From Macrostomum lignano (taxonomy: Eukaryota), in the NCBI GenBank assembly GCA_002269645.1, contig NIVC01002440.1:62001-126000 (forward strand): a stretch of DNA of 64,000 nt, in the 5' to 3' direction. A model generated the notes under the pieces. It was not told the DNA's origin and ran no database searches. It saw only the letters and a program-made list of their open reading frames with translations. Every line of letters starts with the position of its first letter. The stretch's first letter is position 1. The translations under genes were made by a program, and so were the position numbers. Of this stretch, positions 1 through 50,875 are shown piece after piece.

Positions 1-349
1 AGTTGGCTGGGGGATTGACAGGCGACTCACACCCATTAGGGCCAACCCCCTCTCATAGGTGACGTAACCAACATTCATTTGAGGCCTGTGCATGAAAGTT
101 GGCTGGGGGATTGACAGGCGACTCACACCCATTAGGGCCAACCCCCTCTCATAGGTGACGTAACCAACATTCATTTGAGGCCTGTGCATGAAAGTTGGCT
201 GGGGGATTGACAGGCGACTCACACCCATTAGGGCCAACCCCCTCTTATAGGTGACGTGACCAACATTCATTTGATGCCTGTGCATGAAAGTTGGCTGGGG
301 GATTGACAGGCGAATCACACCCATTAGGGCCAACCCCCTCTCATAGGTG
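1..349. repeat. Tandem repeat, 96-bp unit, ~3.6 copies (truncated by window start)
   Basis: AGTTGGCTGGGGGATTGACAGG recurs at 1, 97, 193 and 289. Confidence 0.95.
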
Positions 350-580
350 ATCAGCAATCAGCGGAATGGACAAAATTGCCGCATCGTTGTGGGACATGGG
401 CTGTTGTCGAAGGCGTGTTGCGGCAGGGAGCCCACAGCACTCCTGTGAACATTACTATCATCAATGCCTTATAAAAGAGAAGAGTTCATGGTGTTACGCG
501 AGTACAGTAAACTTCAGCTTCAGCTGAGGAAATTGGTATGAAAAAATCGGACACAATCTGGATTAGGTCAAAACGCACGG

Positions 581-796
581 TCAAGGACAGCGCAAGAGTT
601 CCGTCATGTGCTCACCGTAGCAGTCTTTGTTAAGCGGCAGCCTGGCGAAGCCCCGCCCGGGACAGGGGACGCAGCCATCGCTGCTCACCATCTGGAACTC
701 GGTGCATCCGTGCGTCCTCCGCAGCGACGCGGCGTCCTCTTGGGCAGCAACAGTCGCGACTGCGACCAGCAATGCCAAGCTTGCAGAGAAAATCAT
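581..796 (-). CDS. Signal-peptide-bearing Cys-rich secreted protein; probably first coding exon (candidate donor G|GTGAGC at 616/615), otherwise a 71-aa single-exon ORF
   Basis: ATG at 796. Hydrophobic MIFSASLALLVAVATVAA is followed by QEDAASLRR and a CxxC motif (GCVPCPG). Codon usage resembles neighbouring genes. Confidence 0.55.
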   Translation of the reverse strand: MIFSASLALLVAVATVAAQEDAASLRRTHGCTEFQMVSSDGCVPCPGRGFARLPLNKDCYGEHMTELLRCP

Positions 797-2336
797 TGCG
801 TTCAGATTTCAGTGCAGGATTGAGCCCACATGCATTTCAGTTCGGGGTCGCACATTTGAAGCATTTATTTACCCGCGTCATAAACTTTCATCTGATAATT
901 GGCTGCACGTTGCATGCAAACAACATGCAGCTACGTAGACTTTGGAATTTGAACTGAAGCGTCTTCTACCCTTAGTTTTAATTATTTATCTTATTCCGTT
1001 GCTAATTCTCTACTATCTAGACTTCGGTCATCTCCTAGCTGTTAGCCTACCAGGGATGTCTTCTTCGCATTTTGCACCGCGCTGACCCCAGCAATCGTAA
1101 ACAAACCGGCCAGAAAAGAGACGCCGAAGCCAAGGCATCTGGGGGCAAAAGTTTTCTGTCAGCCATCGTGTCGTTCGTGGGTTTGTCGGTCTATTTGATG
1201 GCGATGTGAACAAGCCTTAAAGTGCATCGCCTGAAGCGAATCGGATGAAAGGGGCAAAGGGAGCTGTTGTTGTTAAACGGAAGTGCCATCGAGTGCAAAA
1301 TGCCCGTCAGACAGGGTCGACCGTGAGATCAATTTCGCCACCGGTGAACACTTGATCCCACTGCCGTAAACACGCGAGAGCCTGTCACTCATCTTCATTG
1401 TCTAGAATCGCGGTATCTGGTGGGTCACACTGTCAGGGTACCAATAACTTCTGGGGCTCATGCCTTCCAGGTGGTCCATTTACCAGCTCCCTTCGCGGGT
1501 AGGTTCACCTAGCGCAATGACAGCTCAAAGCAGCACAGAGCGCGGCACTCTTCCTGAAATACGAGCAGCTCAGCCGCCAAGTTCGTCAGCCAGGCTGCCC
1601 CGGTCACACAAAAGTACCCTCCGGGCAGAGTGCACCCAAACAGGCAATCGCGCAGTCTTTACGTCTCAATTGGCTGAGTTGCGGGGAAAATCTCCCATTT
1701 ACTGGGGCAATTTACCGGACCACTGCAGACTAGCCATTGCGAATTTTTGGGCTCATAGTTTGTGGTCGAATAGCTAGAAAAATCTAGCGTACTACTACTA
1801 TTCAAATCGCATTCAGTAGTATACACAGAAAGCATTAATAAATGAAAATATTTGAGAGATTGGTGAAATGGCGAGCACTTATTATAATTTCTTCTTCACC
1901 GCAAACTCAGGCTTTCATCTGAATTGCAGTCGCCAGAACAAAACCAAAATGTGAGCTGCATTCATCCACTCTCCCGTCCGTTGGCAGTCAGTCAGCCAGT
2001 CAGTCAGTCAGTCAGTCAGCCGCTCGGCCACAGGCTGGTGCCGCCCGCCAATTCAAGCAGATTTCAATAAAAATTGCAGGTGATTTTGCCCCGGACAAAA
2101 AAGCCCCGGACAAAGGAGACGATGCAAAAGCGAAAAAGTTGGGCTGACTGACTGCAGGCGGATTCGGGGTACTTCGGCATAAAAAGCTCTTCAGCTTAAT
2201 CGAATGACTGATAGTAAAATGCAAGAGCGCTCTCTGACTGGCTCTGTGTCTCAAAAATTCCGGTGCAGTGCCATCTCAAATGTGGGCTATAATTAAAGTA
2301 AAAAATCGCAAGCTTCATCATCCTTTCTCATCAGTT

Positions 2337-3128
2337 GTCAGCAGGGATGCTGGCTGTGTCAGCAGGACTAGAGGAAACTGTCAGCAGGGATGCTGGCTGT
2401 GTCAGCAGGACTAGAGGAAACTGTCAGCAGGGATGCTGGCTGTGTCAGCAGGACTAGAGGAAACTGTCAGCAGGGATGCTGGCTGTGTCAGCCGTGTCAG
2501 CTGTGTCAGCAGGACTAGAGGAAACTGTCAGCAGGGATGCTGGCTGTGTCAGCAGGACTAGAGGAAACTGTCAGCAGGGATGCTGGCTGTGTCATCAGGA
2601 CTAGAGGAAACTGTCAGCAGGGATACTGGCTGTGTCAGCAGGACTAGAGGAAACTGTCAGCAGGGATACTGGCTGTGTCAGCAGGACTAGAGGAAACTGT
2701 CAGCAGGGATACTGGCTGTGTCAGCAGGACTAGAGGAAACTGTCAGCAGGGATACTGGCTGTGTCAGCAGGACTAGAGGAAACTGTCAGCAGGGATACTG
2801 GCTGTGTCAGTTGTGTCAGCAGGACTAGAGGAAACTGTCAGCAGGGATACTGGCTGTGTCAGCCGTGTCAGCTGTGTCAGCAGGACTAGAGGAAACTGTC
2901 AGCAGGGATGCTGGCTGTGTCAGCAGGACTAGAGGAAACTGTCAACAGGGATGCTGGCTGTGTCAGCAGGGATGCTGGCTGTGTCAGCAGGACTAGAGGA
3001 AACTGTCAGCAGGGATGCTGGCTGTGTCAGCAGGACTAGAGGAAACTGTCAGCAGGGATGCTGGCTGTGTCAGCAGGACTAGAGGAAACTGTCAGCAGGG
3101 ATGCTGGCTGTGTCAGCAGGACTTGAGG
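2337..3128. repeat. Minisatellite, 43-bp unit, ~18 copies
   Basis: Unit CAGCAGGGATGCTGGCTGTGT-CAGCAGGACTAGAGGAAACTGT, itself two related half-units. Confidence 0.95.
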
Positions 3129-4658
3129 GAACAATTTAGCGCTGCACTGTCTCGCAAAAGCAATTCGACAATTTGCAAATGTTTTGCGGACTTCAACCAA
3201 CTCGCCCATCAGACAGTCTGCCCCATTATAAAAAGCAGCTGGGCCCTAAAAATAGGCCGTCTGACAGCTCCACACGAGCTGTGCCAAAGCAAATTGGCAA
3301 GTCTGCTGCCACTAAAAGCAAGCTCTCCTAGAGGAAAGTCCAGGCCAATTATCGCACCTGCAATGCCTCGCGCCAGTCTCAGACAGAAATAGCGTCAGAC
3401 TCATCAGTCATAAAAAACTGTTGCTGCCTGCAGGAGGGACGCCGTAAAGAACGCAGCTTTTTAATCGCCGAGGGGCATCAGCGCCGAGTGCGACTCTAAT
3501 GGTGGTCTGTGGGGCGAGTCGCAGCCCGTGTGATTGACAGCCCCGCTAATGCCTTCCTGGGCCCTGCCGGGTCTTGAGAGCGGCAGCGATGATGCCGTGC
3601 AGCATCAGTCAGTTTCTGATGGTGTAAAAACAGCCCCGATGCCGGCTCTGTTTGCTGAGAGCAAACAGCCTCAGTGTCTCCCCCCGCAGCAGCATTGTTG
3701 CCATTCGGTGAGCACAGGCAGCCTCTTGCTGGCGCCCCGAACCACTTTGCTCAGGTGGGCAGCTCAGGCAGTCCCGTGTTTGCCAAGGCCTGGTCAGGTG
3801 CGGGTGACTGCTGCTGTTTCTTGGAAGTCTACCTAATCGCTTTGTGATCACTTGGTTGGCCTATTTTAAAACAATAAAAAATCCGAACGATGAAGGATTG
3901 AGGGAAGCTGAGACCCGCGTAAGCTGGGGGGGGGGTAATTGATGAGGCTCAATAATTCTGCAGCGGCGCGGGATGGCTGGCTTCAGCAGCAGGAAATCCA
4001 TCTTCGGTCATTTGATGACGGACTGGAGGCAGCAGCTCAGACGAAGCTCTGGGACATTTTTGGATCCGCCTACGGCTTCTTTGGGAATAAAGAATCTCAA
4101 AGAGCCTCTGAAATAGCCGAAGAATTCCACGGCACTGCAGCGGAGGCTCCCGTGTCAATCATAATTAGCTCCACTTCGGCTCACAAGGACTCACTGGACT
4201 CAGACCTGCCGTGCACCTGAAACACAGTTCTGTTTTCCTCTCACCTCTCAGCTTTCAATTCCGCGGCCTGGGGGCTCCAGCAATCTAAATTGGTAATTTG
4301 AGCACCTCAGCGGCAGATCTGAGCTGCCCTGCACGAATGCGGGCTGCAGAGTGATGCAGAAATTCTTGATCAGTAGCTTAAATTTGGAATCAGAGAGCCG
4401 ACTGTTCTGCAATTCATGCTCAAAATAAAAAAATAATCGTTAATTGACATTGGCGCGGACTGCTCAAGATAATCTGCACCGAGCTTCCCTGGCTAGCGAG
4501 TTTGCTCAATTGGTGTATTTCGGAATCGAATATAGTAGCTTCATCAGTAGTTAGTTTCACCCACTACCGCAAACTCTGCTCTGCTCCACTCTGAGTCACC
4601 GAAAGTGAGGACAGGTCTTCAAGTGTGAAATCTACGGCTGAAAGGTTCTGTGCTGAGT

Positions 4659-5129
4659 TCACTCGTGCAGGCGGTGAAGCTTGCGGAGAAACCTGCGCTT
4701 CATCATCAGCGGGTCGAACTTCTTCATCATCAGCGGGTCGAACTTCTTCATCATCAGTGGGTCGAACTTCTTCATCATCAGCGGGTCGAACCTCTTCATC
4801 ATCAGTGGGTCGAACTTCTTCATCATCAGCGGGTCGAACTTCTTCATCATCAGCGGGTCGAACTTCTTCATCATCAGCGGGTCGAACTTCTTCATCATCA
4901 GCGGGTCGAACCTCTTCATCATCAGCGGATCGAACTTCTTCATCATCAGCGGGTCGAACCTCTTCATCATCAGCGGATCGAACTTCTTCATCATCAGCGG
5001 GTCGAACTTCTTCATCATCAGCGGGTCGAACTTCTTCATCATCAGCGGGTCGAACTTCTTCATCATCAGCGGGTCGAACCTCTTCTCTTCATCCCGACTG
5101 TCATCTTCCATGTCTTCGGAGTCGGGCAT
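4659..5129 (-). CDS. Neuropeptide precursor exon 2: acidic spacer plus 16 x FDPLMM flanked by KK/KR dibasic sites
   Basis: Acceptor ctgatctctccag|ATG at 5130/5129, phase 0. Unit variants seen are synonymous (CCG/CCA, GAC/GAT) or KK/KR. Stop TGA at 4659. Confidence 0.85.
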   Translation of the reverse strand: MPDSEDMEDDSRDEEKRFDPLMMKKFDPLMMKKFDPLMMKKFDPLMMKKFDPLMMKRFDPLMMKKFDPLMMKRFDPLMMKKFDPLMMKKFDPLMMKKFDPLMMKKFDPLMMKRFDPLMMKKFDPLMMKKFDPLMMKKFDPLMMKRRFLRKLHRLHE

Positions 5130-5380
5130 CTGGAGAGATCAGTTTTAAGATCAATTGTAGTGAAACTAAATCTCAAAATCTGCACTTTGAAGTCACTTTC
5201 AGATCGCTAAACTCCCTAAAACGTTTCTTCCAGAGCCTTAATGGAATTCTCCTGTTGGAAATGCAAATTACTGTCATTTAACTGTCGGCATCCCCAAATT
5301 TACTCATTTCGCCGACTGCGTGACTGAAACAGAACTCAGACGCTTGCTGGCATTGCACAGAGGCCGGATGCCTTGCTCAC

Positions 5381-5530
5381 AGGCGAGTTTTCTTTGAGGT
5401 CAAGTTTATCCAGCTTCTCACCCAGCCCGTCACCCAGCCCGTCACGCACCTCGCAGTGGGTCACTCCAGCACAGAGCAGAAAGGCCATCAGGCAGGCCAG
5501 GCCAATCCGGCAGGTGGAATTGTGGCGCAT
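5381..5530 (-). CDS. Neuropeptide precursor exon 1 (signal peptide, 50 aa)
   Basis: MRHNSTCRIGLACLMAFLLCAGVTHC-EVRDG...ENSP. Donor CCT|GTGAGC at 5381/5380, phase 0, matches the exon 2 acceptor; intron 251 bp. Confidence 0.8.
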
Positions 5531-6131
5531 TTCAGCGTGGCTTCAGTAGATAGACAGTCTATTTTCGTCTTGGGTTCTGCAAGGAGGTTTTTGTCAGTTA
5601 GACAGGGACAGTTTCACGTGAATTCATGGCAGCAAAATTGTACGACTAATTGTTTCCAATCGCTAAGATGCGCCTCAAAAAAAGTTAGCCAAGAAAAAAC
5701 TTGAAGAGGCTTAGAAAACTGCGCGGACTCATTGAGAGGATACAGTAGCCCTGGCTGCGGCTAATTAATTATTAAGCCTCATTATAAGCATCCATAGCGC
5801 ACGCGAGACCGCAAGCGGACATGCCTGCAGTTCAAGTCAGAATTCAGCAAAAATTCTGCGCAAGCGGCTGCTTTGCAGATGAATTTTTCATTTGAGTCGG
5901 GCTCGAGACCGCGGCGGATACCCCGGGGCCATAAAGATCCGCGGCAGACAAGAGATTACTGAGGTATCGATTGCAGGGGATAAACGGAGACGATGTTGGC
6001 TGCAGGACAAGCTGATTGCGGATCGGGAGAGCTGCTCATCATGGCGGCAACAGAGGGCGCGGACACGGGCCCACAGCTATCTATAGATCGCATCGGAGAC
6101 CTTCGCTGTGTTGCTGGGCATTGAAGGCGAC

Positions 6132-6160
6132 TTAGGGTTAGGGTTAGGGTTAGGGTAGGG
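6132..6160 (+). repeat. Interstitial telomeric repeat (TTAGGG)4 TAGGG
   Basis: Direct reading: ttagggttagggttagggttagggtaggg. Confidence 0.85.
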
Positions 6161-8539
6161 CCCAGCCAGACTTTTCATTTGCATATCGACTGGCAAGGAG
6201 ACCTCTGTGCATATCGACTCCCTGGCCCTTATTAATTGTTCTCAATTAGTGTCTAAAGTCAGTTGCAGCTGCCTGCAGTCTGCTCACTCAGTATTGAGCG
6301 AGTGCAGCCGCTCTCTGATACTCTCTGGGTCTCTCTGGCCTGCTGAAGCAACTTTCTCACCTGACTTTATTCAAGGCTGGCGGAGTCGGGCTGCTGCAGT
6401 CGCTGGCGGAGGCTGAGGGCTGAGTGCGCTTCCTTCCTCTATCGGCGACTTTCCTGACGGCCGACTTTTACCGAGTAAAAATATAGGAGGCCGCTGCAGG
6501 AGGCTGAGGCGGGTGCGGCCACCCAGCCTCCTCTCCGCCAGTGATGGTGCTGCGGAGGCCGGGGTTGGCGGTGGGTGGAGACGAAGCGATGCAGCCACCC
6601 AAATTCAACCTGCCTGACTGCACTGATCAATTAGCAAGAGTAAGGAGATTGCGCCGTGCTGTCAATGACAAGCAAAGGTATGCTAGAGAGAAATTAATTT
6701 ATCAAAAGCACATAACGTGCAGAGCCTTTTTATTCTTGGAATTCAAATTAACTCATAATTGCTTTGTCATTGCACAACGATGGGCAAAACTCAAGAGGGA
6801 ACAAATGAGTCGGAGCTACATGTATTTATTATGACGAAACCAGTAATGCACTGTTCTAAGGATTGAGATGAGTTAAATGCTCCAGATTAGTTACTCGTAA
6901 ACGTATAATACTTCCTTCGGACGGATTACAAAAGTTCCATTACATTTTGAGGGAACATGGGACTCAGTCACTCAGTAGATGTTAATATGATGAATAAATG
7001 TCAAGGTGTCTGAGGCGTAACCTGTGCCGAGATGCGCCTGCGCTACTGAAGGTCAGTTCGAACTGGGAATCATGTGCACTTTGTGATTTGTTGGCTTTTT
7101 AATGAACGAAGCCTTAGATGCACACATTTAAAGTTAATGTACATCTGGCGATTTGATGGCCAGATCTGATAAACAGACACTCTGATAAACAGCTGATAAC
7201 GCGACCACTCAACGCTGACCACCAACTGTCTGCACGCTCACGAAATCGCTTGCACTTTAGCAGCGATTCACAAACACCCACCATCCTAGAACTTCCACGT
7301 CTGTCTGGACCTGGGTCACGTGATGCCGCCACCCCAACTCCACTCTTATGTTTTCTGCCCCTGGCTGTTTGTGTAGACATGCCCGGCTCTGTACATTAGC
7401 TATCTGTGTACATTCCCTGCCCCACCCCAATCCAGTCTGCACGTCACTGTTTTGGTCTGGTATGCGATAACGCCATCCCACTTCCAAGACGCTTTAAGTT
7501 GAATCTACAGGAGCTGATGAGATTTGCCACTTGGAACAGAGCCACGGGATGTACCCGGCTAGCTTTAATTTCGCACCATTTAGAACAAAAGTATCGATTT
7601 CTGACACTCAGACTGTATTGTTTAAGAGTGAAAATATAAAATAACGAAGTCATAATCTAAAATATTCCTTGAAGATCTTGACTGTCTTGACTGGCGGTGA
7701 CTTCAAACTGGCTTTTCAAATGTATGCCTGTACTGCTGCTCCTGAGTCCATTCTGCGGTGCGATCGCTTTTTGCAGCACCTGAAACAATCTCGCCTACAA
7801 AGCAAATTAGCTAACAAGATGAGATAGTCACTGCCAAAGGACAACTCTACAAACTGGGGTCTGTGCGCTCAATCGAATTATGATTGCTCCCTGTAGCTGG
7901 AAGCTCGACAACCATAATTTCGACGCCAAGAAAGGGGAAGAGGAAAAAAGCGACGCATCGAAGAAGATCCGCATAACTTCATTTGGGAATTGCGGGGGAC
8001 AAACGGGCGCGGCCGCTGCGGTGCGTCTCCGGCAGTCATGCGAGCAGCCAAGTGGGGGGGGGGTCTCGGCTCAGCGCAGACAAGTCCTGATCCCTAAACT
8101 AAGGGAAACTCCTATACGAGACCTGTTGGATAATAAAATGGGATAACGAACAGACTAACAGGGGAGAGATAATAATGGATAAAAATGTACAAGTAAAATG
8201 TAAATGCAAGAAGTGCGTGCCAGCTTCAGCCATTCCGACAGCTCGCAGCTTTTCGGAGTTTGTCATGTGCCTCACTATTGTAATCGCAATCACTGTCACA
8301 CTGACAGCCACATTCCTGCATTTTTACTGCCACCTGCTGAGAGGTGAGAGGTGGCTGTTACGCAACTCTGCTGAGCCGCGGCACCCAGCAAGCAGCGCCG
8401 CGCCATGGGGGGAGAGTTTAGCTGTTGCTGAGTATCACTAGGTGATGTAAATTAGATGCCAGATTTGGGATCAAGGTCGCGGGGATTTCCTTGCTCCTTG
8501 GAGACGGGATAAAGGAATTAAGTGCGAGGTGGCGCTTCG

Positions 8540-9120
8540 AAATCAATATGATAGGATATGGGACTGGGATGTGAGATGAGACATGGGAATGGGATGTGAG
8601 ATGGGAATAGGATGTGAGATGGGAATAAGGATGTGAGATGGGAATAGGATGTGAGATGGGAATAGGATGTGAGATAAGATATTGGATTGGAATGGGATAT
8701 GAGATGGGATAAGGGAATTGGATGAGATGGGATAAGGGAATTGGATGAGATGAGACATGGGAATAGAATGTGAGATAGGATATGGGAACGGGATGTGGGA
8801 TGAGACATGGGAATGGGATGCGAGATAGGAATAGGATATGTGAGATAAGATATTGGAATGGGATGTGAGATGGGAATAGGATGTGATATAAGATATTGGA
8901 GTAGGATGTGAGATAGGATATGGGAACGGGATGTGAGATGAGACATGGGAATGGGATGTGAGATGGGAATAGGATGTGAGATAAGATATTGGAATGGGAT
9001 GTGAGATGGAATGTGAGAATGGGATAAGATGAGACATGGGAATGGGATGTGAGACAGGATATGAGAATACGGTGAGATGGGATTTGGGGATGGGATGTGA
9101 GATGGGATATGACGTTGGGC
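8540..9120. repeat. Degenerate GA-rich minisatellite (GGGATGTGAGATGGGAATA-like)
   Basis: Recurrent GGATGTGAGAT cores with variable spacers. Confidence 0.85.
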
Positions 9121-9495
9121 TGATATGGGACCAGTCGCTAATGCTCAAAATAGATGCAGGGGAGACTCAAAGCGATGGCGGCAAGCGTCAAGGAAAATGA
9201 GCAGAGAAGGCAAATGCAAAAGCAACCATACCACATCAAAAGGCTCAGCATCAGTGAAGTTAGTTCGTGTTTTTACGATTAAACCACCCAGGGCGAAACC
9301 ACCCAGGACTGACACGTGTGCGATTCTTTCTACAGCTGCTTTGTCCTCATCTCTTTGAGGCCGCCAGGCAGTCAATTTGGACATTATCAAACAGAGAAAG
9401 TCTCATAACGAATGAAATCGAAGTTTTTGCAAGAATCGAATGGTCAAAAAACGCAATATGCTTCTCCAAGGAAGCATACGATGATGCCATGCAGG

Positions 9496-10317
9496 GCGGG
9501 TCCTGAGGGCGATTTTGTGTAAGGAGCGGGTCGTGAGGGCGATTTTGTGTAAGGAGCGGGTCCTGAGGTCGGTTTGGTGCAAGGAGCGGGTCGTGAGGGC
9601 GATTTTGTGTAAGGAGCGGGTCCTGAGGGCGATTTTGTGTAAGAGGCGGGTCGTGAGGGCGATTTTGTGTAAGGAGCGGGTCCTGAGGGCGATTTTGTGT
9701 AAGGAGCGGGTCCTGAGGGCGATTTTGTGTAAGAAGCGGGTCCTGAGGGCGATTTTGTGTAAGGAGCGGGTCCTGAGGGCGATTTTGTGTAACAGGCGGG
9801 TCCTGAGGCCGATTTTGTGTAAGGAGCGGGTCCTGAAGCCGATTTTGTGTAAGGAGCGGGCCCGGAGGCCGATTTTGTGTAAGGAGCGGGCCCTGAGGCC
9901 GATTTTGTGTAAGGAGCGGGTCCTGAGGCCGATTTTGTGTAAGGAGCGGGTCCCGAGGTCGGTTTGGTGTAAGGAGCGGGTCCTGAGGCCGATTTTGTGT
10001 AAGGAGCGGGTCCTGAGGCCGATTTTGTGTAAGGAGCGGGTCCCGAGGTCGGTTTGGTGTAAGGAGCGGGTCCTGAGGCGGATTTTGTGTAAGGAGCGGG
10101 TCCTGAGGCCGATTTTGTGTAAGGAGCGGGCCCGGAGGCCGATTTTGTGTAAGGAGCGGGTCCTGAGGCCGATTTTGTGTAAGGAGCGGGTCCTGAGGTT
10201 GGTTTGGTGTAAGGAGCGGGTCCTGAGGCCGATTTTGTGTAAGGAGCGGGTCCTGAGGCCGATTTTGTGTAAGGAGCGGGTCCTGAGGCCGATTTTGTGT
10301 AAGGAGCGGGTCCTGAG
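9496..10317. repeat. Minisatellite, 30-bp unit, ~27 copies
   Basis: Unit AAGGAGCGGGTCCTGAGG(G/C)CGATTTTGTGT. Confidence 0.95.
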
Positions 10318-10765
10318 AAACCAACCTTTCAACCGAAGTGAATTGAAAACCCGAGCTGAATCGAAAATGACCAAACACAGTGGAAGGCAGAGAAGACAAA
10401 ATGCATATTTTTCAACTGGTTGGCGGGCCCGAGGCAGCTTATATTAGTTTTTTTGCGTCTTTGAAAATGTATTTTGCCGCAGACCGCCAGCCGGCAGCCA
10501 ATCTCGCAGCTCAAATCCCTCGGAGTTCCGCTCGCTGGCCAGTAGGAACCCGAGCTTTCAGCATCGCACCGCTGAGCGCCTCAACAACAGCAATGCAATG
10601 CGAGATCGACAGTTCGAGGGTGACAGGCGGAGTGCCAGATGGAGAGTGACAGTCAGCATGGCGGGGGCGGCAGAGTTGACAACAGCAAGCCTACAGTAGT
10701 AATTATAGCATAGCAAGGTAGGGAGATCAGAGCTGGTTGACGCGGGCGGCTACTTAAAGACGAAG

Positions 10766-15355: not shown

Positions 15356-15397
15356 GTAAGCAAAAGAACAAATTTCAAGCTCCGATAGCTGACTCAC

Positions 15398-15532
15398 TTT
15401 TCAATGCTTGGCGAGCAGCGCACGAACTCGTGATCCCAGAACCTGTAGCTGGGATTCTTTAGCAGCTCGGTGAAGGTCAGCAGGAGACCCCACGGATGCG
15501 GCCGGTTCACGATCAGGCGCTCCAGCAGCACC
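15398..15532 (-). CDS. CNOT1: CNOT1 coding exon missed by the ORF track
   Basis: cag|G GTG CTG CTG GAG...GAA AA|gtgagt encodes [44 protein letters not shown], the invariant NOT1 C-terminal motif; 135 nt, phases 2/2. Confidence 0.95.
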
Positions 15533-15696
15533 CTGCGGTTCGGTGGGGGGGGGGGGAAGGCGGGCTTGAGATTGAAATCAGCTGAAGGATGCCATTTAGT
15601 GATTCTAGTTTTACTTTCTGTGGCTGCCCCACGTTTCCCCTTGCAGCCTTTTCTGACACCATAGAATCCTCGTGCAACACCCCAGGAACTTTTTGA

Positions 15697-16130
15697 ACAC
15701 CCTAGGGCCTATGATCTTTCTGTAACACCCTAGGATCCTTCTGTAACACCCTACGATCCTTCTGTAACACCCTAGGATCCTTCTGTAACACCCTAGGATC
15801 CTTCTGTAACACCCTATGATCCTTCTGTAACACCCTAGGATCCTTCTGTAACACTCTATGATCCTTCTGTAACACCCTAGGATACTTCTGTAACACCCTA
15901 TGATCCTTCTGTAACACCCTAGGATCCTTCTGTAACACCCTATGATCCTTCTGTAACACCCTATGATCCTTCTGTAACACCCTAGGATCCTTCTGTAACA
16001 CCCTAGGATCCTTCTGTAACACCCTATGATCCTTCTGTAACACCCTATGATCCTTCTGTAACACCCTAGGATCCTTCTGTAACACCATAAGATCCTTCTG
16101 TAACACCCTAGGATCCTTCTGTAACACCCT
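15697..16130. repeat. Intronic minisatellite, 21-bp unit, ~20 copies
   Basis: Unit CCCTA(G/T)GATCCTTCTGTAACA. Confidence 0.95.
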
Positions 16131-16210
16131 TGGTTCTGCTAGCAAACGAAACCATTAAGCAGTTTATCAACTCAACACCCTTTGGGTTTTTAATCAAGTT
16201 GTGTAATCAC

Positions 16211-17013
16211 CTGGTAATCTGCTCCTTAATCTGCTCGTTGTTGCTCTCGCGGAAGAAGAACAACAGGATCTGATTGAAGTAGAAGGTGTGCGAGTTCGGA
16301 TAGCGCAGCTGATTGGCCATGGCGTTGAGCAGCAGGTAGCGGCCCTCGGTACAGCACAGCATGACCAGAGCCTGCAGGGTCTCGGTCTCAACGCAGTGAG
16401 TCATGTTGTACGGCTGCAGCGAGTTGCCGCTCTCGTTGATCCGCTTGACGGCCCGCCTGCCGACGTACAGCACCAGCGCGTTGGTGAGCTCGACATGGTA
16501 GCGCCGGCCCTCCTCGCCGTCGTCAGCCCGGATGCGGCTTTGCACATCCGTGAGGAACTGCACCGGCTTCCGCGTGGCCAGGAAGCCGTCAACCTCCTCG
16601 CGCAGCTTGGCGGGGATGTTGGTCTCCAGGCCGGCGAAGGAGCCGCGCGGCTCCTGTTGCATCTCCGGCAGGGCGCAGCACTGCGAGGCCGGGCTCTGGA
16701 TGGGGTCCAGCAGCTGCACGAACTTGGGGAAGGCGGACAGGACGAGGTTGCGGAGCTGGATGCAGTTGGCGGGGATCACGTCGCACAGGGCATGGTGATA
16801 CTCGCTGATGAAGTCCGGGAAATCGTGCAGCAGCACCAGGATGAGGCGCAGGGTGCCGCGGTACAGCAGGTGCACAGTCTTGATGAAGTTGGCGGTGGCC
16901 AGGAATGGCGCGATAAATTTCAGCAGATCCACCAGCAGCTGGGCGTACATGGACCAGGCCGCCTGGTTGCCGAGGTACTTGGACAGCACGGACCGGTGCG
17001 AGATGCACTCCAC
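16211..17013 (-). CDS. CNOT1: CNOT1 coding exon (Not1 C-terminal domain)
   Basis: cag|GTG GAG TGC...ACC AG|gtgatt; contains YAQLLVDLLKFIAPFL and NAMANQLRYPNSHTFYF. Confidence 0.95.
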
Positions 17014-17122
17014 CTGGGGGTGCGCAGGTTGGGGCGCTGGTGAGGATGCGGTGCTGGCACTGGGAAACTGATACGCGATCCAAGTGGGTGGCAAAGTCTT
17101 CAGGGGATCTGGGAGGGGGGCA

Positions 17123-17775
17123 GTGGCTCAACAGCTGAGGATCTGGGAGTGAGGTGGCGGTGGCCCAACAGCTGAGGATCTGGGAGTGAGGTGGCGGTGG
17201 CTCAACAGCTGAGGATCTGGGAGTGAGGTGGCGGTGGCCCAACAGCTGAGGATCTGGGAGTGAGGTGGCGGTGGCCCAACAGCTGAGGATCTGGGAGTGA
17301 GGTGGCGGTGGCCCAACAGCTGAGGATCTGGGAGTGAGGTGGCGGTGGCCCAACAGCTGAGGATCTGGGAGTGAGGTGGCGGTGGCCCAACAGCTGAGGA
17401 TCTGGGAGTGAGGTGGCGGTGGCCCAACAGCTGAGGATCTGGGAGTGAGGTGGCGGTGGCCCAACAGCTGAGGATCTGGGAGTGAGGTGGCGATGGCTTA
17501 GCAGCTGAGGATCTGGGAGTGAGGTGGCGGTGGCCCAACAGCTGAGGATCTGGGAGTGAGGTGGCGGTGGCCCAACAGCTGAGGATCTGGGAGTGAGGTG
17601 GCGGTGGCCCAACAGCTGAGGATCTGGGAGTGAGGTGGCGGTGGCCCAACAGCTGAGGATCTGGGAGTGAGGTGGCGATGGCTTAGCAGCTGAGGATCTG
17701 GGAGTGAGGTGGCGGTAGCCCAACAGCTGAGGATCTGGGAGTGAGGTGGCGGTGGCCTAGCAACTGAGGATCTGG
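17123..17775. repeat. Intronic minisatellite, 37-bp unit, ~17 copies
   Basis: Unit CAGCTGAGGATCTGGGAGTGAGGTGGCGGTGGCCCAA. Confidence 0.95.
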
Positions 17776-17837
17776 CGGCGAACAGAGAACGCAAAACGGC
17801 CGGTGTCAGTGAAGAAGCCATAAAGCAAGCGCCTTAC

Positions 17838-18315
17838 CCAGCTGTAGGTGAAGGAGGGCGCCTTGGCAGGCCTGACAATGTGCAGCGCATTGGCGAAGGC
17901 CGCCAGCATGGGGACGGTCAAGGTGGTCAGGGTGTTGATCTGCGGACTGTCAGCATCGGCGGTGGCCGGGGAGAGCAGCTCGCTGAACAGAAGGATGAAG
18001 ATCCGCTGGAAGGGCATCGGGTGGAACCGGTCAGACCGGATGTCCTGCTCCTGCAGCAGGGTACCGGAAATGATGCCAAGGATTTTGTTCAGCAGGTTGA
18101 TCTTCGTGCTGGCGCTGCCCTCGCGCTCTCGCTGTCTCTCTATATCTGCGGCAGCCCCATGCTCGCCGCTGTGCTTCACCATCACGGCGATGAGGCGGAT
18201 GTAGGCGTCCAGCTCCTGATAGCAGCTGACCCGGTTGCCAAGGACCTCCTGACCGGACTTGAGCAGAGCGCGGAAGCAGTGCTCCATCACGTAGTCGGTG
18301 GTCAGCCGGAAGAAC
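17838..18315 (-). CDS. CNOT1: CNOT1 coding exon
   Basis: cag|G TTC TTC CGG...AGC TGG|gtaagg; RFFRLTTDY, TKINLLNKILGII and RPAKAPSFTYSW match NOT1. Confidence 0.95.
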
Positions 18316-18442
18316 CTGCGGCGGTGGGAGGGGTGGAGCAGTGATTCGGGGAGTATATGGCTGAATTAAGCAAGTCTAAGTTTGGCAGTCTAATGAGGAA
18401 CGCCTTGAAGTTGATGGTTTTGTATCCCAAGTGCAGACTAAG

Positions 18443-18990
18443 GGACAGACATGAGATCCTGAATCTCAGATGCAGATGATGGGGCAGACATGAGATCCTG
18501 AATCTCAGGTGCAGATTATGTGGCAGACATGAGATCCTGAATCTCAGATGCAGATGATGTGGCAGACATGAGATCCTGAATCTCAGATGCAGATTATGTG
18601 GCAGACATGAGATCCTGAATCTCAGATGCAGATGATGGGGCAGACAAGAGATCCTGAATCTCAGATGCAGATTATGGGGGCAGATCTGAATCTCAGATGC
18701 AGACTATGAAGCAGATCTGAATCTCAGGTGCAGACTATGAAGCAGATCTGAATCTCAGGTGCAGACTATGAAGCAGATCTGAATCTCAGGTGCGACTATG
18801 GGGCAGATCTGAATCTCAGGTGCGACTATGGGGCAGATGAGATCCTGAATCTCAGGTGCAGATTATGGGGCAGATCTGAATCTCAGGTGCAGACTATGAA
18901 GCAGATCTGAATCTCAGGTGCAGATTATGGGGGCAGATCTGAATCTCAGATGCAGATTATGGGACAGACATGAGATCCTGAATCTCAGAT
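18443..18990. repeat. Intronic composite minisatellite (39-bp unit and a shorter ~30-bp unit)
   Basis: Core (GAGATC)CTGAATCTCAG(A/G)TGCAGA. Confidence 0.9.
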
Positions 18991-19026
18991 TATTTAAGAG
19001 TACAGGTTATAAAGCCACAGATTTAC

Positions 19027-21879
19027 CTAGTAATGATATCGTCGGTCTTTAGTATTCCAAACGTCGTCATATCCTTCACGAAGGTGTTGAACCCGCGCTG
19101 GTCCACCACCCGCTGGGTGCTGTACATGTTGTACCACTTCTTCATGAGGTTCTCGCTGGCCTCCTGCAGCCAGTGTGGATCGTCGAACTCCCTGGCCTGA
19201 GAGCAGCCGCTGTACAGATAGGTGGTGGCGGGCTGCTGGTGGGCCTCCAGCAGGCCAAAGTCCAGCAGGCCGCGCACCTGGTGGTAGACCTGGACGTACT
19301 CCCTGGGCACGTGATCTGGCGGAGACTTCTCAATCAGATGGGCGATAACCGCGATGGTGCCGGTGAGGTCGCACTCGTTGAGCACAGTCTGCTCCCGGCT
19401 GTCGTTGAGCACCAGCGCGTGGAACAGGTCCATGACAAACCGCAGGGCTCGCAGGTTGCTCTGCCGGATCTGCTTGGCCAGGTGCGAGTCCACAGCCTGC
19501 AGACTGACGATGTGAATCTTTAGCAGCTCGATGAAGGCGTCGCTATTCCACTTCTGCGGCTCCGGCATGTCCGTCCAGATCTGCGTCACCACGTGACTCA
19601 TGCAGCTGGAGTAGCCCAGGCCGCTGAGCTTGGGCTGGTACATCAGCCTGAGCACCACCGTGTGCGCCTCCTTGTAGCGCTCCAGCACCTCCTGGGGGAA
19701 TTGCGCCTGCATTGGGTGGCGCCGGAACGTCTGGAACAGCGACTGGACGGCCGCCTCCACCACTTTGCTAGCGTAAGCGTCGTTGGCGGACGACTTGGCA
19801 CGCTTGGCCCGCTCGACCAGCACGCGGAGGCGCTGCACCAGCTGGGCGCTGTCCCCGATGCCGGCACCGGCCGCGGCTGTTGAAGTTGGCGTAGCCAGGC
19901 TGGACGAGTTGGCGATGTACTGCGACTGCCGTTCAACCTCGGCCACGATGGTGTCGAACAGCTGGGCAACCTCGTTGCGGTGCTGCGGCTGCGCCGGTGC
20001 GGCCACCTGCGACGCCTGCGGAGGTGGCTGCTGAGGCGGCTGCGAAGGCTGGGCGGCGGCCATGGCCGGCATGGGCGGAGGAACGGCGGGCGGAGCGTCA
20101 CTGGCGAAGCCGGGAACGCAGTTGGCGTACTCGGAGTACACGGCCAGGCTGTTGAGCGGTGGTGGCCCCACGGCCTTGCGCAGCAGGGGCGGCATGAACT
20201 CGTTCTGGTAGCTCAGCTGCTGCTGGTCGAAGTACCGCCTGCCCTCCTGCCGGGCGTGGATGCGCAGCCGGTACTCGGTCTCCAGGGTCACGTCCACCTG
20301 CACCAGGGCCTTCTCAACGCACACCTTCTGTATGTAGGCCGTGCCCAGCTCGAAGTTGTCCTGGGCGATGACGCGGGCGGCGTCCTCGATCAACTCGCGC
20401 TGATGGGCGGTGGGAGAGCTAAGGCCCTGCATGAACTGCTGCTTGAGCTTGGTCTCCATGTTGACGCTCAGCGCCTCTCGGCAGGTGATGAGGGCCATGC
20501 CGGCAGTCAGGCAGCGGGTCATGTTGTGCGCCGCCGACCTAAGGTGGCTCTCGTCGTCGTCCAGGGCAAAGTCTTTGCGCACGACGCCCTCCACGGTGCC
20601 GAGGACGATCCGAACGCAGCGCTGAGCCACAGGCTCCATCAGCTCGCCGACTGTGAGCTCCAGGGTCTGTCGGATGCCGCTGGCCAGGCCTGGGCTGGCC
20701 TGAAGCAGCGGGAGGCCGAGATTCACGTTGAAGAAGGCGCTTAGCGGTCGACTGGTGTCGATGTCGGTCCACTTGAACCTCGGCAGCGGCGGGTTCATGC
20801 CGCCCTGCTGCTGCATGAGCTGCAACGCTGACGGGTCGAGGTGCATCTGAGGCGGCAGCTGCTGCTGGGACGGCGGCGGCAGCGGCTGCTGCGGCTCGAA
20901 CTCCTCGGCTGGGGCGGTCATCCTGGGCGGCAGCTGCTGCTCGTGCTCAGCGGCGGTGGACGGTGCGGCTGCAGAGCCGCGGGCGCCGGCAGCGGAGCCC
21001 CGGATAAGGCAGTTCTCCACTTCGATCTGGCGGATTCGGTCGCTATCGCGCAAGTAGTAGGCGGGATCAAGCTGGTCAAAGTTGATTTCCAGCTTCTTGC
21101 ACAGGATTTCCACTTCGAATTTGAGCGAGTTCTTCACCGCCTTGTCCATGTGCAGCTCCTTGAGCACACGGACGATGCCCATGGTCCAGGGGCTGGGCGG
21201 CCGGAACACGGGGCTCAGGGAGCAGGCCTCCAGAGTGCGGGCTACGAACGGCACGGCGTAGTGCATCTCTACCTGGCCCTTGCAATAGGCCTCCAACAGC
21301 AGGCCCTTCAGGTCCATGTCGTCAAACAGGATTGGCCGGTTCTTTGCTAGGGTGAGCAGGCCCAGAAAGTGCCCGATGTTTTTCAGCAGCGAGCGATCGT
21401 TGTAGTCGTTGAGGTCCGGGCGCATGTTCTGCAGCAGGGCGCGGATGCTGCGGAAGGTCTGCTGCAGGACGATCTCGCGCAGGCGGGGCACATTCAGCGC
21501 GTCCATCAGGTCTACGAACAGCTGATGGAAGTTTGGCTCGGTGGTGACTCGCTTCATCACCAGGTACTGGCCGAGCCAGGGCATGAACTCGTCCGGGACG
21601 GCTCTGCGCAGCTCTTCCGACTTGGTGCTCATGTTTATCTTGCTCAGGTTGTTGAAGATGAAGAACACCGCGTCCTGTACGCCCTCCGGCGGGACGGCCG
21701 CCTCTTCGTTGATTTCGCCTTCGCCGGCTCGGCGAATCTGCGAGTCGGGATCGCCGCTCTGCTGGGACCTGGCGGCCAGCTGGATGCCGATCTGCAGGTC
21801 CTTGGGGAACTTGGCAAAGTTGTTGCTGGTCAGCAGGTGGGCCGCCACCTGGCGATAGTTCACCAGGCTACTCTTGCAT
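19027..21879 (-). CDS. CNOT1: CNOT1 large coding exon (MIF4G CAF1-binding domain, DUF3819, start of Not1 domain)
   Basis: cag|A TGC AAG...ACT AG|gtaaat, 2853 nt; FFIFNNLS, WLGQYLVMKRVTTEPNFH, RSLLKNIGHFLGLLTLAKNRPI and RKDFALD. Confidence 0.97.
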
Positions 21880-21918
21880 CTGCGGGCAGCCGGAGTTGCA
21901 ATTCGAGATGCCAAGGTC

Positions 21919-22430
21919 ATTCTCAATGACATCTAGAGGGCGATCCTCAATGACATCTAGAGGGCGATCCTCAATGACATCTAGAGGGCGATCCTCAATG
22001 GCATCTAGAGGCCATTCTCAATGACATCTAGAGAGCGATCCTCAATGACATCTTGAGGGCGATCCTCAATGACATCTAGAGGCCATTATCAATGACATCT
22101 AGAGGGTGATCCTCAATGACATCTAGAGGCCATTCTCAATGACATCTAGAGGGTGATCCTCAATAACATCTAGAGGGTGATCCTCAATGACATCTAGAGG
22201 ACGATCCTCAATGACATCTAGAGGGCGATCCTCAATGACATCTAGAGGGCGATCCTCAATGACATCTAGAGGCCATTCTCAATGACATCTAGAGGGCGAT
22301 CCTCATTGACATCTAGAGGCCATTCTCAATGACATCTAGAGGGCGATCCTCAATGAAATCTAAAGGGCGATCCTCAATGACATCTAGAGGGCGGTCCATA
22401 ATGACATCTAGAGGGCGATCCTCAATGACA
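21919..22430. repeat. Intronic minisatellite, 24-bp unit, ~21 copies
   Basis: Unit AATGACATCTAGAGGGCGATCCTC. Confidence 0.95.
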
Positions 22431-22513
22431 GCTTAGAGGTGATTTGAATGTCATGAGTGCTTGAGTGCAATTTTCAAGGCTCTTTCAAGACTCAGGCTGG
22501 AAAGGCCGCTCAC

Positions 22514-23165
22514 CTCAACAGAATGTCCACGCCAAAGTTGAAGAATGTCTGCTCTGCCTCGGTCTCGATATTCCGGGTGACAATCAGGCTGAGCAGGCGC
22601 AGGAAGAAGGCCAGCACAGAGTGAGAAGTGAGCTGAAACCCCAGGGCGATCACCTGGCCGAACAGCTCGGCCATGATGGCGCGCTGCTTTGGCGGGAAGC
22701 TGGTGGGAATGTGGTGGAACTCGTCGACCAGCACGCGAAGGAAATAATTGCACAGCGGCTTCTCCTTGGGCTCGCGCAGCATGTTGAACACCTCGTCGGA
22801 GGTGATGGTGCCGCTGAACAGGCTCTTCATCATCATGTTGATGCGCTCGTCCAGCTCGGGCGGGCTGGGCGCCGTCAGCTCAGGCGGCAGCGAGGGCCCG
22901 AATCTGCCAGCGGGCGGTATGGGCGGCATGGGCTGCTGGTGCGGGTGATGGTGCATCGACATCGGCATGGGAGGCTGCGGCGGCTGCTGCGACACCTGCG
23001 GCGGCGGCAAGGCGAGTCCAGCAGGCGAGCCGATGGGAATGGCGGACATGGGGATCTTGTGCTTGGGCGTGGCCAGGCCGGGCTGCTGCTGCTGGGGCAC
23101 GAAGCCGGGCAGTTGGCTGGCCAGAGTCTGCTTCAGCATGGCGGAGGCTGGCGACATAGGCAGGC
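22514..23165 (-). CDS. CNOT1: CNOT1 coding exon (Pro/Gln linker and diverged TTP-binding-like HEAT domain)
   Basis: cag|GC CTG CCT ATG...TTG AG|gtgagc; phases 1/2 consistent with neighbouring exons. Confidence 0.88.
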
Positions 23166-23554
23166 CTGCGGGATCAAACGACCAGAGTAGAGTAGTTGCA
23201 AACTGCGTTGCCAGTTTTTCGATACATCAGTTATAGACAACAACGAACAGTGAAGCTACTGCAAGTAGCCAGTTAAACAATTTTATTATTTTCACATCAC
23301 CGACATTCAGTGAGCGAATCGCATCAGATGTACATTCAACTGATTGCAGCAAAATTGTGGGACTCCAATTCCATTTTATATTTTTCTATGCCTGTGAGCT
23401 GCGGTTTCGGCTGCATGGCTTGTGATTAATATCGATCCCCCTCACCCATCCTCTACATCTCGCATTGAAGCGTTAAATATACACACAAAAAGCCACTTAT
23501 TGATACAATAAGATACAACAGCTATATGCTTCAACAAATGCAGTGAAAACTCAC

Positions 23555-24227
23555 CGGCCAGCTGCGAGCTGATGGTGGGCACCGGCGCTCCAATCATCGC
23601 TGCGGCCGCGGCCGCCGTGGTCGCCTTCGCAAACGGCGGCTGCTGCTGTTGCTGCGGCGGCGGCTGAGGCGGCGGAACTGGCGGCTGCTGCTGCTGTTGA
23701 AGGTCGCGCCCGGTTGCCATAGTGACATATTTGTTAAAGCTAATCTTCATCAGGTCGAACTCGGTCTTAATCTCTGACGCCAAGGTCAGCCGGTCCTGCC
23801 GCCGGTCCAGGCACTGCAGGATGGTCTTGACGGAGACGGCGTCCACCTGAGCGGCCCGCATCTGGTCTGTCGGATCGTCCTTGCCCACCATGCGGCCGGC
23901 CCGGCCGGCCAGGAACTTCAGCGCGGCCTGGGCAAACTGGTCGCCGTACTCGGCCAGCCGCTCGGTTACCCAGGCCTCCAGCTTGACGTAGTCCCGCTTG
24001 GCGGCCAGGCAGGCCAGGCTGAGGCTAAACAGGTGGTTGTGCGACTTCAGCACCCAGGCCAGGGTGTCCATGGCCGGCCCGTTGGGCAGCATTTCCAGCA
24101 CCAGGTCCAGGGCGCGGCTGGCCCGGTAGCCCTCGCCCGCCACGGCCTCTCCTTCCGAGACCCAGTCGACCAGGGCGTGCAGGAGGATCGGCCGCACTTG
24201 GGCGAAATTCCACGCGTAGTTTAGCAG
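23555..24227 (-). CDS. CNOT1: CNOT1 coding exon
   Basis: cag|CTG CTA AAC TAC GCG TGG...GCC G|gtgagt; SLACLAAKRDYVKLEAWVTERL matches NOT1. Confidence 0.92.
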
Positions 24228-24339
24228 CTGGGCGGCGAGGGGAAGAGAAAGAATCGGTGTGAAGTTTGAGTGGAATAAAATTGCGGGAGTGGGGATTTGG
24301 GAATTTAATATTAAATTAGAATCTAGCGAGGTGGCGAGA

Positions 24340-24890
24340 GGGGAAGGGCAGGATGAGATGGGGATCTGGGGTGGCAGGATGAGATGGGGATCTGGGAAGG
24401 TGGCAGGATGAGATGGGGATCTGGGGTGGCAGGATGAGATGGGGATCTGGGAAGGTGGCAGGATGCAATGGGGATCTGGGGTGGCAGAATGCAATGGGAT
24501 CTGGGAAGGTGGCAGGATGCAATGGGGATCTGGGGTGGCAGAATGCAATGGGATCTGGGAAGGTGGCAGGATGAGATGGGGATCTGGGGTGGCAGGATGA
24601 GATGGGAATCTGTGAAGGAGGCAGGATGAGATGGGGATCTGGGGTGGCAGGATGAGATGGGGATCTGGGGTGGCAGGATGAGATGGGGATCTGGGGTGGC
24701 AGGATGAGATGGGGATCTCAGGTGGCAGGATGCAATGGGGATCTCAGGTGGCAGGATGCAATGGGCATCTCAGAAGGCGGCAGGATGCAATGGGGATCTG
24801 GGAAGGCGGCAGGATGCAATGGGGATCTGGGAAGGCGGCAGGATGCAATGGGTATCTCAGAAGGCGGCAGAATAAAATTGGGATCTGGAA
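24340..24890. repeat. Intronic minisatellite, ~26-29-bp units
   Basis: Unit GGCAGGATG(AG/CA)ATGGGGATCTGGG(GT/AAGGT). Confidence 0.92.
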
Positions 24891-24920
24891 CAAAAGCAGA
24901 AAATTCGCAAAGCAATTCAC

Positions 24921-25388
24921 CAGAGAAGCACTGGAGTGGCTGGTCAGCAGGATGCAGATAAGGCAGTGCAGCAGCTCCTGCTTCAATATCCCCATAGACT
25001 CGTGGGCCTGCAGCAAGGACAGCATCAGCAGGTCGGGGCAGCTTTTCAGCGGATAGTCGAACAGCTCGCGAACCTCGGTGTAGAATCCCTGCTCAGACAG
25101 CTTCATGAGGGCGTCGATGAGGTCCAGGTTGCGCCACACCTGGGTGGGGCTGCCGCGCAGCTCGTAGTCTGGCGGCAGCTTGAGGCGGCCAATGTCGGTC
25201 TGTCTGTAGCGATAGAAGGTCAGACAGAGCACGTCCGAGTGGATGATGCAGTGGCGCAGGAAGGACAGCTGGCCCTGCGCGTGGTTCCAGTCTCTGTAGA
25301 AGACGTCAATCGGCAGGTCGCTGCTGGAGCCCTGGGCGCCATTGCTGAGGCACTTGCGGAGCAGCTCGAATGCCCGCTTGGACTTCAC
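24921..25388 (-). CDS. CNOT1: CNOT1 coding exon
   Basis: cag|GTG AAG TCC...TCT CTG|gtgaat; FYRDWNHAQGQLSFL and FDYPLKSCPDLLMLSLLQ. Confidence 0.93.
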
Positions 25389-25659
25389 CTGGGTTGGCAA
25401 TGACAACATGGCAATGAGCGAATTTCTAATTAAGAATCAATTTGTCAAGACGCAAGGCGGCAAGCGGACAGGCTACGAAGTGGGGAACCGCTGAGCTACC
25501 CCCCTACCTGTAAACACATCAAGTTCTATTCTTGCTACTCGTTAGTAGGCGATCTCTTAGAATAATTTACTCAAAGAGCCAATTATTTAATAAAGTTTCT
25601 AAAATGGCATGGGCATCAGAGCAAAAGCCCCAATGCCATAAATCATATCTGAGCCTCAC

Positions 25660-30119: not shown

Positions 30120-30210
30120 GGCATAGTTCTAGTTTATTTTGTTATATTCCAACCCCCTTACCCTTGAATAGAGGGCAAAATAATTTAACACGGTAAACTA
30201 GAACTATGCC
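30120..30210. mobile_element. 91-bp mini-MITE
   Basis: 17-bp TIR GGCATAGTTCTAGTTTA / TAAACTAGAACTATGCC; 8-bp TSD TTAGACTT at 30112-30119 and 30211-30218. Confidence 0.85.

Positions 30211-49884: not shown

Positions 49885-50875
<991 letters not shown>

Follow-up and report, generated by a model that had tools for sequence, protein, structure and literature searches.

A Macrostomum lignano gene for sixteen FDPLMM copies as a probable prohormone gene of the flatworm NPP-26/SPP-15 family

We analysed 64,000 nucleotides (nt) of the flatworm Macrostomum lignano (scaffold NIVC01002440.1 of assembly GCA_002269645.1, positions 62,001 to 126,000; this whole stretch is called the window, and positions below are counted within it). 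Our analysis indicated that the minus strand at 4659–5530 very probably holds a gene for a prohormone that belongs to the NPP-26/SPP-15 ("FDPI-type") family of flatworm neuropeptides. The precursor is likely to be 183 amino acids (aa) long, with a 27-codon signal-peptide exon joined to a second exon that carries a spacer, 16 copies of the hexapeptide FDPLMM, and a basic tail. An earlier note on this DNA had proposed a two-exon gene for a secreted peptide precursor with all copies in one exon, and our analysis supports that proposal.

Gene structure and the public gene model

Coding exon 1 (5450–5530, minus strand, as are all features of the gene) starts at ATG 5530, which opens MRHNSTCRIGLACLMAFLLCAGVTHC and has an in-frame stop five codons upstream. 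Its 27 codons, MRHNSTCRIGLACLMAFLLCAGVTHCE, are identical to residues 1–27 of PAA57848.1, comprise the predicted signal peptide plus one residue, and end in phase 0 at the donor GAG/GTGCGT (here and below, slashes mark splice or cleavage boundaries). At the N-terminus, R2 and R8 make the n-region basic; there is a hydrophobic core of 15 residues (mean Kyte–Doolittle value ~2.5), and positions −3 and −1 hold the small residues T and C. Exon 2 (471 nt) begins with an acidic pro-region spacer, MPDSEDMEDDSRDEEKR (5079–5129), which ends in the first KR site and, as judged from the translation, is also present in PAA57848.1. The spacer is followed by 16 tandem units of 24 base pairs (bp) at 4695–5078, each encoding FDPLMM and a basic pair, and then by a C-terminal tail, RFLRKLHRLHE, with a TGA stop at 4659–4661 (4659–4694 in all); the translated C-terminus is the same as that of PAA57848.1. 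With all genomic copies, the full coding sequence (CDS) amounts to 552 nt.

Tandem Repeats Finder (TRF) reported the array as 16.2 copies of 24 bp at 4698–5085 with 95% matches, and a pattern search, together with translation, gave exactly 16 in-register units, where none would be expected by chance. The units differ by GAC>GAT (two units), CCG>CCA (two units), and AAG>AGG (three units), and the last one ends in AAGCGC. Translation of the 16 units showed that all of these variants are synonymous or change K to R. A KR site precedes copy 1, and the copies are followed by KK (12 of 16) or KR (4 of 16). None of the 16 has a Gly before the basic pair, and since this residue is the amidation donor, FDPLMM should be a free acid. 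These properties of the array, namely its 16 copies behind an acidic spacer ending in KR, its KK or KR boundaries, its synonymous or K/R variants, and its lack of Gly, had all been described in the earlier note, which likewise predicted a free acid, and were borne out by the translated sequence. The note had also considered that copies of the array might occur elsewhere without coding flanks; the pattern search found none in the rest of the 64-kb window.

PAA57848.1 is recorded in GenBank as [quoted passage not shown], a product of 95 aa with the layout MRHNSTCRIGLACLMAFLLCAGVTHCE-MPDSEDMEDDSRDEEKR-(FDPLMM ×5)-RFLRKLHRLHE. Its gene spans 872 nt of NIVC01002440.1, which is the exact length of 4659–5530, and positions 1–10530 of the window match the scaffold with 100% identity over 10,530 nt. 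The Mlig_3_7 annotation was built from RNA-seq data (StringTie/TACO) and from de novo transcripts mapped with BLAT (PMC5730564), and the junction between exons 1 and 2 therefore has RNA support. The expectation that this gene would be hidden from annotation was thus only partly right: it is already annotated as BOX15_Mlig023240g1, but in a model that holds 5 of the 16 copies and bears no functional name.

The five-copy product is most likely an artefact, arising from a collapsed short-read transcript that was mapped with a forced canonical gap. The missing segment (4792–5055) is 264 nt or 11 units long, begins with the final base of copy 1, closes with the AG in the AGG codon of copy 12, and is evidently taken for a GT..AG "intron" by the GenBank model. 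In a deletion test, 96 deletions of 264 nt could each yield the 95-aa PAA57848.1 exactly, and this was the only one of them with GT..AG ends. It is distinctly unlikely that the five-copy model is nevertheless correct, either because segment 5055–4792 is truly spliced out as an "exitron" or because both forms exist and tune the peptide dose. A canonical gap of exactly 11 units that reproduces PAA57848.1, an AG created by the AAG>AGG (K>R) variant in copy 12, and the RNA-derived nature of the annotation would agree with such splicing. However, the donor context AA/GTTCGA is unlike the GT[G/A]AG of M. lignano, codon usage in the segment is as optimal as elsewhere in the array, and the specificity of the event would be left unexplained, as the same GT ends all 15 internal units and AGG acceptors are found in copies 5 and 7 as well. 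Collapse of near-identical 24-bp repeats is routine in de novo assembly from short reads, and BLAT favours GT..AG gaps. This is the program with which the annotation pipeline mapped its de novo transcripts (PMC5730564).

The intron of our model occupies 5130–5449 (320 nt, GT..CAG, phase 0), and its removal gives the ..THCE/MPDS.. of PAA57848.1. It contains an alternative donor, GTGAGC (5380), and a 12-bp repeat in 2.3 copies (5418–5445). The acceptor, ...CTCTCCAG, ends at 5130, and an in-frame stop immediately upstream of it means that the exon-2 frame cannot extend in the 5′ direction without splicing; an upstream in-frame extension of exon 2 and a read-through of exon 1 were both rejected, as they run into stops. 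The earlier note had placed a GT–AG intron at 5380–5130 and predicted a prepropeptide of 206 aa. ATG 5530, the GT at 5380, and the AG ending at 5130 do exist, and the ORF (open reading frame) joined in this way does encode 206 aa. The acceptor is also that of the GenBank model, but there THCE is joined to MPDS by a donor at 5450/5449, which gives the 320-nt intron and, when all copies are included, a full product of 183 aa rather than 206. We conclude that 5449 is probably the main donor and that the 23 extra residues of the 206-aa form, VRDGLGDGLGEKLDKLDLKENSP, are probably intronic.

Use of the donor at 5381/5380 (GTGAGC) as the main or a co-used site, which would add 23 pro-region residues to give a 206-aa precursor, is unlikely. 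This donor keeps the reading frame, and its GTGAG fits the top cis-donor motif of M. lignano, GT[G/A]AG, seen at ~65% of cis donors (PMC8629364), whereas the annotated GTGCG does not. In contrast, the sole RNA-derived product on record uses 5450/5449, the protein collection searched has no entry for the 206-aa form, and 5449–5381 has a negative coding score and a GC content at third codon positions of 0.61, compared with 0.78 in exon 1. Three donors of the neighbouring CNOT1 gene, located by eye near the ends of tblastn high-scoring segment pairs, have AG before the GT, like the GAG/GT at 5450, whereas the 5381 site reads CCT/GT. In addition, the intron of schistosome npp-26 lies at the end of the signal peptide, matching 5449. 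The signal peptide and the mature peptides are the same with either donor.

No exact match was found in a collection of 15 billion proteins for the 183-aa or the 206-aa product, or for the 156-aa product of the exon-2 ORF. A literature search for FDPLMM or Mlig023240 likewise found no paper; Koziol et al. 2016, where the NPP families are reportedly defined, lay outside that search. Further upstream, the TTGCAG at 5577–5582 (minus strand), 46 nt before the ATG, is by its motif a possible acceptor for spliced-leader trans-splicing or within the 5′ untranslated region. It is preceded by a CTAAC element resembling a branch point and by a pyrimidine run, and it fits the M. lignano spliced-leader acceptor motif [T/C]TNCAG (PMC8629364). 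Judging from these sequence elements, the FDPLMM mRNA may be trans-spliced.

Coding sequence or chance repeat

In a window so rich in minisatellites (80 TRF rows), the array might itself be a non-coding one, and its open frame, its KR flank, and the "signal peptide" upstream might be coincidental. Several of the features that drew attention to this locus do not discriminate between a gene and such a repeat. The array is open in five of the six frames. Among ~15 other arrays of the window with a period that is a multiple of three, one, a 21-bp ×20 array in a CNOT1 intron (15708–16130, minus strand), also passed as a dibasic open frame, since it reads GCYRRIL ×20 with RR in every unit; we therefore rejected an open frame with one dibasic pair per unit as a coding criterion. 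Similarly, 23 GT..AG pairs around the intron keep the ORF and four donors suit the acceptor at 5130, so that a phase match alone is weak evidence. The unit variants belong to only three independent types, and the probability that none of them disrupts the peptide or the basic pair is ~0.05 for transitions alone and 0.006 for all changes.

The features that go well beyond chance are the signal-like N-terminus, the codon usage, and the external RNA-based model with its homologues. Signal-like starts are rare: only 4 of the 1692 ATGs of the window, ATG 5530 among them, passed a crude filter for stop-free starts with a basic n-region, a core of 12 or more uncharged residues, and a 9-mer Kyte–Doolittle value of at least 2.4. 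The unit codons (TTC GAC CCG CTG ATG ATG AAG AAG) are each the top synonymous codon in the neighbouring 969-codon CNOT1 exon, and the unit scores 1.37 bits per codon, far above the −0.5 to +0.37 obtained for the best frames of eight control arrays. Codon optimality thus sets the coding FDPLMM array apart from the non-coding arrays nearby. These results, along with a spliced CDS annotated from RNA, paralogues and schistosome homologues that share the motif and layout, and an intron position common to the schistosome genes, appear effectively to refute a non-coding minisatellite.

Relatives and assignment to the NPP-26/SPP-15 family

A word-indexed protein search with the 206-aa query returned only a protein of the nematode Caenorhabditis angaria and missed the M. 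lignano entry; PAA57848.1 was recovered by an exhaustive HMMER search, whose results refer to the best 150 of 413 matches. Apart from the proteins described here, nearly all of the 42 shorter matches (<400 aa) in that set were unrelated repeat proteins, low-complexity sequences, or translated repeats of other organisms, and we rejected them as homologues. In Pfam, the joined protein gave only a sub-threshold match to Cornifin, which is due to low complexity. The HMMER search also found at least two M. lignano paralogues. One of them, A0A1I8HH48 (a fragment), has eight copies of FDPLIM with KR or RKR linkers, and the other, A0A1I8FZM5 (named "Secreted protein" in UniProt), has a signal peptide and eight copies of FDPLYGM with KR or MKR linkers. 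Both share with the FDPLMM precursor the FDPL core and the arrangement of tandem copies between basic sites, and differ from it in the C-terminal residues (IM or YGM) and in their pro-regions, which are different and longer.

FDPIMF-like peptides of planarians, to which the earlier note had compared FDPLMM, are real: Schmidtea mediterranea SPP-15 yields FDPIMFamide and FDPIQFamide, both confirmed by tandem mass spectrometry (MS/MS), and Gly-extended FDPIQFG was also seen (Collins et al. 2010, PMC2953531, Table 3). The same authors equate SPP-15 with the Schistosoma NPP-26 peptides SYFDPILF, NFDPILF, and EHFDPIIY (PMC2953531). The SPP-15 peptides compared are hexapeptides starting with FDP, and FDPIMF and FDPLMM are identical at four of six positions, with conservative replacements at the other two. 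The planarian peptides are amidated, whereas the FDPLMM copies lack Gly and in this respect match the -OH form of schistosomes, in which the S. mansoni NPP-26 (Sm-NPP-26) peptides were detected as free acids by liquid chromatography–MS/MS (PMC9495596). Collins et al. 2010 defined prohormones by a signal sequence, flanking basic sites, and a length below 200 aa (PMC2953531); the 183-aa product has all three, and the 206-aa version exceeds that length.

For a profile search, the seeds were the proteins of M. lignano and C. angaria along with two strings made up of the published schistosome and planarian peptides. The search returned schistosomatid NPP-26 precursors, a retrieval that is partly circular given these seeds. 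The precursor recovered for S. mansoni NPP-26 (Smp_071050) holds all six reported peptides; one of its two loci lies in GCF_000237925.1, which we take to be the S. mansoni RefSeq assembly. The schistosomatid precursors consist of a signal peptide, a spacer, and, bounded by KR sites and without Gly, 5–7 copies of [xx]FDPI[x][F/Y]. In BLASTP, the 183-aa product matched Trichobilharzia NPP-26 (xxFDPIMF) with 51% identity over 68 aa and an E value of 4e-14, and Sm-NPP-26 with an E value of 1e-10 in an alignment from the signal peptide onward, both E values being inflated by the repeats. Sm-NPP-26 and its schistosomatid orthologues share with the M. lignano product the signal peptide, the spacer, the F-D-P-[I/L]-x-hydrophobic copies, the dibasic sites, and the lack of Gly, and the Trichobilharzia precursor even carries FDPIMF. 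Gene structure, which serves as an independent check, agrees as well. In S. mansoni, S. rodhaini, S. japonicum, and Heterobilharzia, npp-26 has two coding exons, the first of 31–35 codons, separated by a phase-0 intron (..VNA/IPVHE); the intron of the M. lignano gene likewise is in phase 0 and lies where the signal peptide ends, after an exon 1 of 27 codons (..THCE/MPDS). Signal-peptide exons are common in genes for secreted proteins, and the shared intron position is therefore moderate evidence only.

The two groups also differ. M. lignano has 16 identical copies and the schistosomatid precursors 5–7 diverged ones; schistosome peptides carry an N-terminal extension of one or two residues (S-Y, N, T-Y, E-H) that FDPLMM lacks; and the intron is 320 nt in M. 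lignano compared with 6–8.6 kb in schistosomatids. Within the core, FDPLMM has Leu for Ile at position 4 and a C-terminal Met for Phe or Tyr, both of which are conservative replacements. The features of the NPP-26/SPP-15 family that we find in the M. lignano gene are the signal-like N-terminus, the tandem core peptides, the flanking basic sites, the C-terminal chemistry predicted from the sequence, and the gene structure.

A number of points weigh against this assignment. Transcription and splicing of the gene, as we model them, rest on the public gene model, and in the PAA57848.1 record the gene span (872 nt) is visible while the exon coordinates had to be reconstructed from the protein. GTGCG, the annotated donor, is not of the type seen most often in M. 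lignano, and identical copies with three variant types give little power to detect purifying selection. Besides the partial circularity of the profile search, the BLASTP signal comes almost wholly from the repeated K/R-FDP-I/L motif, and the pro-regions do not align. Finally, the linkers are mostly KK in M. lignano (12 of 16) and almost exclusively KR in the relatives, and KK linkers may be cleaved less efficiently than KR.

A related question is whether the product is neuronal. In schistosomes, the Neuron 3 cluster, which is positive for 7B2 and complexin, has NPP-26 as its unique marker, and in situ hybridization labels ~6 neurons of the miracidium, with a weak signal also in apical gland cell nuclei (PMC11349301). 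In planarians, spp-15 is listed among the neuropeptide genes of the nervous system (PMC4214590). The weak gland signal, and the expression of some planarian prohormones in glands and reproductive organs, would fit a secreted repeat protein or peptide precursor with a non-neuronal role (gland, adhesive, reproductive, or antimicrobial). We regard such a role as very improbable, as the closest relatives, NPP-26 and spp-15, are neuronal and the architecture is that of a classic multi-copy neuropeptide precursor.

If the gene encodes a neuropeptide prohormone, its signal peptide would be removed in the endoplasmic reticulum at about THC/E, a PC2-type convertase would cut at the dibasic KR and KK sites, and a carboxypeptidase would trim the basic residues to release up to 16 FDPLMM peptides with a free-acid C-terminus. 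By analogy with NPP-26, FDPLMM-OH might be released from a small set of neurons and act on a receptor. The number and uniformity of the copies probably reflect recent unequal crossing-over in a minisatellite-prone genome, with the frame kept by selection.

The earlier note had also seen in the FD-x-hydrophobic start a resemblance to pedal-peptide/orcokinin (PP/OK) peptides. These have ~13–18 residues, with [F/L]D-x-[I/L] as the N-terminal and [S/A]GF as the C-terminal motif. FDPLMM does begin with FDPL, but it is only six residues long, has no GF motif, and so falls outside this definition; planarians have separate pedal-peptide-like genes, ppp-1 and ppp-2. As predicted for FDPLMM, PP/OK peptides are multi-copy and non-amidated, and those of starfish share an identical FDPL: ArPPLN1b, FGGKGAFDPLSAGFTD, is a PP/OK peptide, and starfish peptides contain FDPLSAGFTD (PMC5656890). 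The FDPLYGM of A0A1I8FZM5, with a Gly and a hydrophobic residue after FDPL, faintly recalls the starfish FDPLSAGF. That the FDP[I/L]xx hexapeptides of flatworms are truncated descendants of the bilaterian PP/OK family is nonetheless a long shot. Such a descent could run via FDPLYGM, starfish FDPLSAGF, and the FDPxx precursor of C. angaria as possible intermediates and, if true, would tie a "flatworm-specific" family to an ancient peptide–receptor system.

The C. angaria precursor is an uncharacterized protein of 159 aa (CANHGI010000006.1, L007:1501-2832), in whose gene a phase-0 intron separates a signal-peptide exon of 18 codons from an exon that encodes 12 short FDPxx(x) peptides between KK or KR sites, without Gly. 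These peptides have 5–6 residues and variable tails, examples being FDPYA, FDPLS, and FDPMFN. Among the best 150 of the 413 HMMER matches, no other nematode protein was of this kind. The likeness of the C. angaria precursor to those of flatworms may reflect either convergence or a deeper relationship.

Genomic surroundings and significance

Two features lie close to the FDPLMM gene. An interstitial telomere-type repeat, (TTAGGG)×5, is found ~600 bp upstream (6132–6160), and an annotated gene with a 231-aa product lies downstream (1–796, minus strand); it starts at 796 and runs past the left end of the window. Rfam and tRNA scans of the window found nothing.

Pfam searches with the large ORFs of the window identified CNOT1, an FG-nucleoporin, and CWC25. 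The CNOT1 gene (15397–26754, minus strand) has ~38% identity to vertebrate proteins and very large exons, one of which has 969 codons and no exact match in the protein collection. Almost every gap between its exon segments, as mapped by tblastn, consists largely of minisatellite (24347–24890, 21922–22439, 18442–18990, 17105–17775, and 15708–16130). A 33-bp ×15 array at 61213–61717 (minus strand) lies in frame within a 557-codon ORF with a CWC25 domain (60872–62545), gives RSPPRHKD-like repeats, and may represent protein-coding minisatellite DNA within a housekeeping gene. At 46555–48669 (minus strand) there is a GC-rich ORF of 704 codons with 21-bp and CGG-type repeats and no Pfam match. A second signal-peptide-like start, MPRLALLTCLLAALCA (55098–55145, minus strand), is directly followed by the donor GCCT/GTGAGT, with an acceptor, ..GATTGCAG, ~70 nt downstream. 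Another gene for a secreted protein may have its first exon here. The remaining landmarks are an AT-rich block at 28000–36000 (GC 0.29–0.37), which has abrupt edges amid GC-rich (0.55–0.68) genes and arrays and contains no convincing ORFs, and two tetranucleotide microsatellites, (TACT)×306 at 41073–42297 and (AGAC)×245 at 49886–50867.

The FDPLMM gene also illustrates how multi-copy peptide genes fare in repetitive genomes. In this genome, 15% of which is tandem repeat, transcript-based annotation retained the gene but left it unnamed and assigned 11 of the 16 copies to an "intron". Multi-copy neuropeptide genes in repeat-rich genomes are likely to be systematically shortened or lost. The codon optimality of the repeat unit offers a practical test to tell coding from non-coding arrays; in this window it clearly set the FDPLMM array apart from about a dozen non-coding ones.

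The FDPLMM precursor would be the first macrostomorph member of the NPP-26/SPP-15 family so far found, all other documented members coming from planarians and schistosomes. Among flatworms, M. lignano branches early and is tractable to transgenesis. Given this position, the presence of a member in M. lignano would date the FDP-type peptide to the base of the flatworms sampled, and M. lignano could serve as a system in which to find the receptor of this peptide family and to learn its function; the family has been put forward as a target for schistosome control.

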